From positions 12,400,001 to 12,464,000 of the forward strand of contig OZ116704.1 in NCBI GenBank assembly GCA_964199315.1: 64,000 nt of DNA, read 5' to 3'. Position 1 is the first letter of the stretch. Every line of letters starts with the position of its first letter. This DNA is from Orbicella franksi. Its lineage: Eukaryota. Both the position numbers and the translations under genes were made by a program. Under the pieces are notes generated by a model. The model was not told the origin of the DNA and ran no database searches. It saw nothing but the letters and a program-made list of their open reading frames with translations. Positions 22,101-25,100 of the stretch are shown in pieces.

Positions 22101-25100
22101 GTAGTGCAGGAATCAAAGTTATCATGGTCACTGGTGATCATCCAATCACAGCTAAGGCCATTGCTAAAGGAGTTGGAATCATTTCAGAAGGTGAAAAAGA
22201 GTTATGCCTTAAATGATATTTTCTACATTTCCAATGGAGTTGAAAACGTAATTTGCTTGTCAGTGACTATACAATATTATTGTCCACCATAGAAGAGAAA
22301 TACTTACTACATGTAGAAGATATTTTTATCATGTAAGGAATAGTGTCTTGAGATTATGATCTGAAGATATCATCGCTTGAGCAGGGATGTAGTTAAGAAA
22401 ACTCTAACCCGCCTCATTAGCGAGCCCAGCCTGCTTTTCTGGCCTTGGCAGCTGCAAAGGTTACTGAATTTTTTGTCTTCATGTAAAATTGCAGCTGAAT
22501 TTTAAGTCCTCTTTCAGCAGGAGAAATAAGTTTGTAGCCTGCCCTAAGTGACTCTCCTACTTGAGGGTTGGTGTTCTAAGGGCTAGTCTTCATCCCAGCT
22601 GTTTTGTAGACTGCACATTGCACAACGTTTGTCTCCACTGGTTACATTCCTGCCCAGAGGTCTAGCCAGTTACAGTTAGATTTCATTTATTGGTCAGTTT
22701 AACAAATTGACACTAGTTTTTCATGAGTCTGTCCTGTTATTGATTATCACGAACAGTCACGTGTGACAATAATTGTTATGTAACATTTAGTCTCAAAGTT
22801 TTGGTTTTGTTTGTACAGATCATACTTGATTTCAACTTGATTTTCCAGGTTTTATATTATGATCAAATTAATTGTATATATGTTACGACATGTGTCATTT
22901 TTGCAGCGGATATGTTTTTCGATAGATCAATAAGCAAATTCACAAATTTACGACTGTAGTTACAAGTTTGTAACATTGATCATGAATTTTGTCATAATAT
23001 TGTCAAAGTAGCTGTTGATCCACGAGGCGATAGCCAAGTGGATCCGTAGACTACATTGACAATGTTATGATGAAATTCATTGTCAGTAACAGGACAGACC
23101 CATCAAAAACTGAGAACAATTTAGTTTTTAGGTTAACAAACTGTCAAATTGTCCACTCTTGCTCGTTAACACATTGCATAAATTATAAATAATGTGTCTG
23201 TCCGCTTATTGAGAATGAAAATGACCAATGAGTGCGGCAGAATTTGTGCAGTTACTGCAAAAAAAATCAGAATTGCAGAATCTGTCAACTGTACCAATTT
23301 AAGCTTTTGTCATTGGTTAAAGGTCAGTGAACCTACAGCAACACCAGAAATTGGCACATCGTTTTTCACAGGAAAAAGAAATACAATGATTCTACAGTAT
23401 ATAACTCAAAACATCAACATGTATTACAGTCAGGACACTTGAACCGTGAACATTTGACATTTTTTGTACATTTTTTTAGTGACTATAGTATGAGGGTTCT
23501 TCATACTAACAAGATTATTCAATGTTTTTACACTGTAAAAATGCAGATCCTGTACATTTGTAAGAAGAGCCTTCGTTCTTTCATCTCTGAAAAAAGTGCG
23601 AAAAAATGACAGGTGTTCATGGCTCAAGGGTCCTTATTGTAAGCTGTTGGACATGACTATCAAGTGTGCATAAACATTGGAAGGCAATTACTGAATGTGG
23701 AAAATAGATTTAAAATGATTGCACTATTATTTCAGGAACTGAGACAGTAGAGGACATAGCCACTCGTCTTAACATTCCAGTTGAGGAGGTCAACCCAAGA
23801 CAGGCGAAGGCCATCATTGTTCATGGACAACAGCTGAAGGTTAGTGAAAAATTTACAGCACACAAACCTTGCTTAAAATATGAGATAGATTGGCTGTAAA
23901 GGAAGGAGATGAGGAGCTGGAACAGAAGATTTGGGGGAGGTCTGCCACGTTGCTGTCCACTGGATTGAGTGGCGAAGAATTGCTGAAGACCTTTGTGCCA
24001 CCCAGGCACTGATAGGATAGATGACAAAAGCTTAAGTAAGCTGAGGTCTCTTTCAGAGGTGTCATCATCGTCACTTCTCGTCATCATTATCATCATCATT
24101 ATCATTATTATTATCATCCTCATCATCATCATCATCGTCATCTATCCTTAACACTGCACTAGGGGTTGCATGGGACAGTGCACCTTTAGATTAAGGGTTT
24201 TTAAGGTCTTGCAAAATTTCAGCCAGTGATAAGCTCTCTCCCTGGAGAAATAAACCAGCGACATCCCTGCTATTGTCATAAGGTCCATTGTTTTTCTCCT
24301 GCTCAAGTGATTGTGAGGTTTGACTGGAACAATTCCATTAAGATAGAGTGGCTTGGAAGTGATATGTTTAGTTGAGCAACCTTTGAATTTGTGGTTATTA
24401 TAGGATATGACTAGAGAAGACATTGATGACATTCTGGCCCACCACACAGAGATTGTATTTGCCAGAACTTCTCCACAGCAGAAGTTGATCATTGTAGAAG
24501 GCTGTCAGCGACAGGGTGCCATTGTTGCTGTGACTGGAGATGGTGTCAACGATTCTCCAGCCTTGAAGAGAGCAGATATTGGTGTGTAAACTGATCAACT
24601 TTAGCATGAAACTCTCACTTTCGATTTAAACTGGGATTATCATTCTCATGTCCTGTGTTTCTTTGCCAGGTGTTGCAATGGGCATTGCTGGCTCGGACGT
24701 ATCCAAACAGGCAGCAGACATGATCTTGTTGGATGACAACTTTGCTTCCATCGTCACTGGAGTTGAAGAAGGTGTGTATGTATCTTAACCTAATAATTGT
24801 TACATGAATGTAGTTTTGATTTCCAAGTTGAGGTTTCGTTTTTTGGGGATGTAGTTTTGAAAGATTGTGCCTTTGTAATCTGTTAATGGTATGCAGTCTT
24901 AGGTTTGTTTTAGTTCACTACCAAGTCTGTCTATGATGAAGTGTCATGGATTTTCTCATCTGAAAGGTGATGAGAACACCATGCTGCCTTCCTTCTGACT
25001 CAACAGACAGGATTTATTATCATGCAAAAGTTGTTTGTTAATATTTGTTCGAGTCAAATTTCTTTTACGGTCAATTGCTTAGAGCCTCAGTCTGTCAGAC

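Follow-up and report, generated by a model that had tools for sequence, protein, structure and literature searches.

The yeast snoRNA snR52 is produced from an independent gene rather than from an intron, and human SNORD83A and SNORD83B (U83; Rfam families RF01179, snoU83, and RF00593, snoU83B) are box C/D snoRNAs that lie in sense orientation within introns of RPL3. Methylation of A468 in human 18S rRNA has been assigned to SNORD83A (PMC5027482), and snR52 guides modification of both 18S-A420 and 25S-U2921 (PMC9418376), using its D' side for the latter. Movement of snoRNAs from one host gene to another is well documented (e.g. PMC2655684). Here we describe a coral RNA with the same D guide, held in the same position relative to the D box as in yeast snR52 and plant Z13 (RF00335, RF01195), and directed at the same universally conserved 18S tract as the human guide, whose ...UGCUGCCUUCCUU likewise abuts CUGA. 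The coral RNA is intronic and in sense orientation, like the human one, but it is about 10 nt shorter, and it is present as three copies across two paralogous hosts that encode Na+/K+-ATPase alpha instead of RPL3.

The window, by which we mean the whole 64-kb stretch of stony-coral DNA that was analysed, carries two P-type ATPase genes, A on the plus strand and B on the minus strand, in convergent (tail-to-tail) arrangement. All three snoRNA copies are intronic, in sense orientation, in these two Na+/K+-ATPase alpha genes (Table 1), and the exon that follows copy 1 matches solved Na+/K+-ATPase alpha-1 chains with an E-value of 4e-24. Copy 1 lies 153 nt past the 5' splice site and 300 nt ahead of the 3' splice site of its intron; the corresponding distances are 253 and 320 nt for copy 2, and about 280 and about 900 nt for copy 3. 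The splice joint of the intron next after X (25464-25688) was also seen in RNA contigs and reads, and at intron Y the RNA contigs pass from 25784 to the next exon, starting at 26442. The sodium-pump host named in a preliminary description of this DNA is borne out, with the snoRNA inside spliced Na+/K+-ATPase alpha introns. Third codon positions in the exons near 24404-24771 (A) and 41675-42150 (B) differ at 14 of 73 sites, no more than between species, and the introns around the snoRNA can be aligned between the two paralogues. Another intron of gene A holds a tRNA-like gene (19559-19632, plus strand), which scores 34.9 bits with the Rfam tRNA model, just above threshold, and is called tRNA-Ser(CGA) by ARAGORN; it has stem mismatches, including in the acceptor stem, and may be a genuine tRNA, a pseudogene or an element derived from a tRNA.

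Table 1. Positions in the window of the snoRNA copies, their host introns and the parts of copy 1.
Feature	Position	Strand	Details
Host intron X, gene A	24772-25308	+	between ...VTGVEEG and RLIFDNLKK...; holds copy 1; GT..AG joint seen in RNA contigs and reads
Host intron Y, gene A	25785-26441	+	after exon ...KLVNER, two introns downstream of X; holds copy 2
Host intron X', gene B	40413-41674	-	position equivalent to X; holds copy 3; predicted by homology (exon motifs, splice-site context)
snoRNA copy 1	24925-25008	+	84 nt; boxes read directly from the sequence
snoRNA copy 2	26038-26121	+	same boxes and D guide; 93% identity to copy 1
snoRNA copy 3	41309-41392	-	in the second pump gene (B); 94% identity to copy 1
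Copy 1, terminal stem (6 bp)	24925-24930 / 25003-25008	+	GTCTGT / ACAGAC (GUCUGU/ACAGAC in RNA)
Copy 1, C box	24933-24939	+	ATGATGA; CT between it and the 5' stem half
Copy 1, D'-side region	24940-24959	+	20 nt
Copy 1, D' box	24960-24963	+	CTGA; followed by AAG, then the C' box
Copy 1, C' box	24967-24973	+	(G)TGATGA; GAACACCA between it and the guide
Copy 1, 18S guide	24982-24994	+	TGCTGCCTTCCTT, 13 nt; abuts the D box
Copy 1, D box	24995-24998	+	CTGA; followed by CTCA, then the 3' stem half
Decayed partial copy of the snoRNA 5' end	25090-25114	+	GTCTGTCAGACGAAGTGCATGAAAT; C box broken, no D box

The element at 24925-25008 is confirmed as a box C/D snoRNA. It has terminal C and D boxes with a stem, internal D' and C' boxes and a 13-nt antisense element directly beside the D box; the complete box set, terminal stem and 13-nt guide reported in the preliminary description can all be read there. 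The spacers from C to D' (20 nt) and from C' to D (21 nt) are of guide length. The coral RNA also shares with human SNORD83A/B a CAUGGA-like element after the C box that is able to pair just 5' of the guide, and the Rfam consensus of snR52/Z13 has an internal stem at that same place.

The target of the guide was sought in the coral's own rDNA, taking as reference one complete 8.5-kb unit (L004) in which 18S, 5.8S and 28S were mapped with Rfam. The 18S tract complementary to the guide is present, with 1,567 matches in the assembly, and in the reference unit the D guide and 18S 419-431 are joined by 13 uninterrupted Watson-Crick pairs. This perfect 13-bp site is unique in the unit, all other sites having mismatches or G-U pairs. 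The fifth position upstream of the D box pairs with A423, in CCAAGG[A]AGGCAGC, which is exactly the adenosine picked out earlier by the D+5 rule, and its equation with human Am468 (SNORD83A) and yeast Am420 (snR52) agrees with the published site assignments (PMC5027482, PMC9418376). The rDNA units measure about 8.49 kb (the reference unit being G000:C43:2900-11700), and matches to the target motif fall mostly on short contigs composed of rDNA only.

Guide plus D box occur three times in the window, where 0.01 occurrences would be expected by chance, and an 18-mer from the D' side also occurs three times. The copies can be told apart by copy-specific SNPs at 24958-24959, 24965 and 24967-24968 (numbered by copy 1). 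BLAST of the 84 nt against the 497-Mb genome returned these three loci only. A genome-wide search for the pattern TGATGA-N35-85-TGCCTTCCTTCTGA gave three matches, with none in a reversed control; the search demanded an exact guide, so a mismatched guide would escape it. The genome thus seems to have no genes for the A423 guide beyond these three loci, and no copy hosted by RPL3 was found in the coral genome, where the guide pattern is confined to the three pump loci. Since there are only three loci genome-wide, the snoRNA is not a high-copy repeat, a possibility that the preliminary description had singled out as one that would count against it.

Taking these observations together with the conservation and RNA coverage described below, we consider it highly probable that the locus encodes the coral orthologue of the SNORD83/snR52 snoRNA, a functional guide present as three intronic copies in two tail-to-tail pump genes. 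It is a new member of a known snoRNA family and involves no new mechanism. From standard box C/D biology we infer a mature 84-nt RNA, snoRNP assembly and methylation of A423: the pump pre-mRNA would be spliced, Snu13, Nop56, Nop58 and fibrillarin would assemble on the C/D and C'/D' motifs, and these core proteins would shield the segment of about 84 nt while exonucleases trimmed the remaining intron. The 13-nt element next to the D box would then pair with 18S 419-431, and fibrillarin would 2'-O-methylate A423.

The alternative that survives best, though we give it only a slim chance, is that the copies are relics or pseudogenes, once functional but no longer processed or used, with some other RNA guiding the 18S site. 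One point on its side is that Rfam gave no snoRNA match at gathering thresholds. When the local search was instead ranked by E-value, a check that had been proposed from the outset, the best matches were snoU83 (32.7 bits, E 8.5e-4), snoZ13_snr52 (24.3 bits) and snoU83B (21.0 bits). These are exactly the SNORD83/snR52 families, which place the guide identically relative to the D box, but all of the scores are below gathering (RF01179, 32.7 against 50; RF00335, 24.3 against 47; RF00593, 21 against 35; RF01195, 18.6 against 45). The string of guide plus D box aligns identically to the Rfam consensus of each of the three named families. We dismissed a minus-strand match to SNORA27 at 24993-25117, whose 21.7 bits fall short of the gathering score of 64.

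Another way to view the Rfam scores is through related RNAs from other eukaryotes. Scanning metagenome contigs with a pattern of C box, D' box, guide core and D box gave 38 loci, among which are identical-guide snoRNAs whose hosts, as assigned by Pfam, are RPL3 (introns; L013, L026), RPLP0 (an intron; L014) and genes for SNF2-family helicases (L023, L039). These five share the C box, the D' box, an identical 14-nt guide core and the D box with the coral RNA, and the two in helicase genes additionally have TCATGGA...TCCATGCTGCC in common with it. None of the five attains an Rfam gathering score, and because even the RPL3-hosted homologues fail, the family models appear to be taxonomically too narrow. 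The differing host genes among loci with the same guide also show repeated host change in this snoRNA family. It was suggested in the preliminary description that an ion-pump host is unusual. Such a host is indeed uncommon, and our literature search found no paper on Na+/K+-ATPase as a snoRNA host and no coral or cnidarian snoRNA catalogue, but the point was overstated given the identical guides in RPL3, RPLP0 and SNF2-helicase genes and the documented switching of hosts. An ion-pump host is uncommon and breaks no rule.

The second argument for relics comes from the locus itself, where the decayed partial copy beside copy 1 demonstrates that duplication and decay do occur. This fragment, some 80 nt downstream of copy 1, is probably what remains of a tandem duplication; both paralogues retain it in intron X, as do other corals. 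Set against this, no other genomic locus combines this guide with C and D boxes, and the intact copies are conserved across corals. Coral-type RNA was recognised in 10 of the metagenome loci (L015, L016, L020, L021, L028, L038, L040, L041, L046 and L047), and all 10 lie in Na+/K+-ATPase introns at position X or Y, with both paralogue types, A and B, represented. Copy 2 has orthologues in L015, L020, L028, L040 and L041, copy 3 has them in L038 and L047, within genes of the B type, and L028 likewise shows the tail-to-tail pair of pump genes.

We aligned 11 coral sequences, drawn from the window and the metagenomes and covering several coral taxa. The four boxes and the entire segment from C' to D are invariant in all 11, and the terminal stem is kept throughout, with one U-A pair changed to U-G. 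The relic reading is therefore confronted with boxes, stem and guide retained in both paralogues while flanks and synonymous sites diverge. This is seen most sharply in the most diverged contig, L046, in which the snoRNA is identical to copy 1 at 73 of 85 positions, identity falls to 27-36% in the 100-nt flanks, which are in practice unalignable, and third codon positions in the two upstream exons differ at 26 of 73 sites. The borders of the conserved block coincide exactly with the predicted stem. Conservation limited so sharply to the snoRNA is the hallmark of purifying selection acting on the RNA as such.

The third point bearing on whether the copies are relics is expression. The 84-mer is present in ten RNA-library runs from several studies, and we mapped four runs to 24600-26250; these are ordinary libraries, represented by assembled contigs rather than small-RNA reads. 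In run X1, a small random-primed metatranscriptome, a single contig covers 24859-25019 and there is no exon coverage. Run X14 covers 24859-25010 at a depth of 6, the remaining intron at 0 and the exons at 200-300. The copy-1 segment is thus the sole covered part of its intron in two RNA libraries, which argues against relics. Run X7 gives a 75-nt contig at 24925-24999 with a depth of 79, compared with 35 in the downstream intron, 0 upstream and 800-1600 in the exons, although the limits of this contig fall where the three copies diverge and so carry no information on RNA ends. Raw poly-A reads (run X36) contributed only 4 reads at 90-95% identity and are uninformative. Copy 2, in favour of the relic reading, showed no rise of RNA over its intron background in the mapped RNA-library contigs.

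The contigs of X1 and X14, which come from independent studies, share a start exactly at 24859, which lies 66 nt before the snoRNA, and stop 2-11 nt past its 3' end. Because of this 66-nt 5' extension they reflect precursors or intermediates and not the mature RNA, and the RNA spanning 24859-25019 may represent a processing intermediate with an extended 5' end. The extension shows neither a box nor a promoter motif, and most of the extension block is absent from one coral, L040. As a whole, the RNA coverage fits a protected, snoRNP-bound segment of the intron, short of proving an 84-nt product.

A functional orthologue of SNORD83/snR52 could in principle do more than guide A423. On an alternative that we think improbable to a slightly greater degree than the relics, the RNA has a dual function, its D' side also guiding a lineage-specific target, for which G48 of U6 (in the ACAGAGA box) is the best candidate and an accessory pairing with 18S 541-549 is an alternative. 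In its favour, corals keep GTCATGGATTTT together with flawless, unaltered D' and C' boxes, and the snR52 of yeast directs modification of 25S-U2921 through its D' guide (PMC9418376). The D'-side sequence is identical in all three copies, as had been noticed in the preliminary description, but the identity follows from their being close paralogues, and the description of this sequence as a conserved guide does not extend across corals. No part of the RNA varies more in the 11-sequence alignment than positions 1-5 upstream of D', which occur as CTCAT, CTCGC, TTCAC, TTCAA, GTCAT, CACGC, CTCAG and CTCAC, and hence the position that would pair with any D' methylation target varies among C, T and G.

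Scanning the whole rDNA unit (18S, 5.8S, 28S, ETS, ITS and IGS) for D' targets gave nothing above chance: top scores of 15-19 came from many tied sites whose pairing included several G-U pairs and mismatches. An ungapped 10-bp match at 18S 540-549 was rejected as a D' target, with the target at the duplex edge and matches of 9-11 bp at several other rRNA sites. The yeast-type target was likewise rejected. The equivalent A-loop site is present in coral 28S (GGAUUGUUCACCC, U3171) but the coral D' region has no complementarity to it, in contrast to yeast-type contigs in our survey, which have GCGTGAACAATCT before D'. No D' target was found in U1, U2, U4 or U5 snRNA. For the U1 and U2 genes, we observed that they alternate in a tandem array (L051, L054) at about 4727800-4855000 of contig C1 of G000, which repeats about every 2,036 bp and in which more than 40 identical units scored.

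The best snRNA match of the D' region is to U6, with 9 bp (7 Watson-Crick and 2 G-U) placing G48 at the methylation position. This duplex persists in most coral variants, but its score is attained by 6.6-9% of shuffled guides and is not significant after testing six RNAs, and the pairing is weakened or lost in L040, L046 and L047. That the D' half is a coral-specific second guide for 2'-O-methylation of U6 G48, making a dual rRNA/U6 guide in an ion-pump gene, accordingly seems very doubtful to us, and the variation among corals suggests that the D' side probably carries no conserved second guide.

The conserved part of the D' side may instead have a structural role. In the minimum free energy fold (z = -2.8) its GTCATGG is able to form a helix with the CCATG that immediately precedes the D guide, and this helix is longer in the more distant snoRNA homologues hosted by helicase genes (CATGGA/TCCATG in L023 and CATGGAA/TTCCATG in L039). 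A family-wide comparison of the region after the C box with that before the guide gave a mean best helix of 5.33 against 4.93 for shuffled sequences, which is not significant, and within corals both helix strands are invariant, leaving no covariation to draw on. We therefore offer the pairing of D'-side CAUGG with CCAUG as a suggestion.

The remaining possibility, a functionless chance cluster of motifs or a piece of a mobile repeat, might be raised given that short box motifs are common and that introns here hold repeats, but it is refuted by copy number (three in the genome and none in the reversed control, with a window expectation far below one) and by the confinement of conservation to the snoRNA in L046, and we put its probability close to nil.

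Support is good, then, for the coral RNA as a cnidarian orthologue of an rRNA-methylation guide that is ancient and common to yeast, plants and humans. Because its only gene copies sit in two sodium-pump paralogues, the coral relies on pump transcription for its supply of the guide. For the family, the Rfam models of SNORD83/snR52 appear to miss non-bilaterian members. The locus offers a clean and datable case of a snoRNA host switch together with duplication within and between introns, and it is of use both for the annotation of coral non-coding RNAs and for studies of host-gene turnover.
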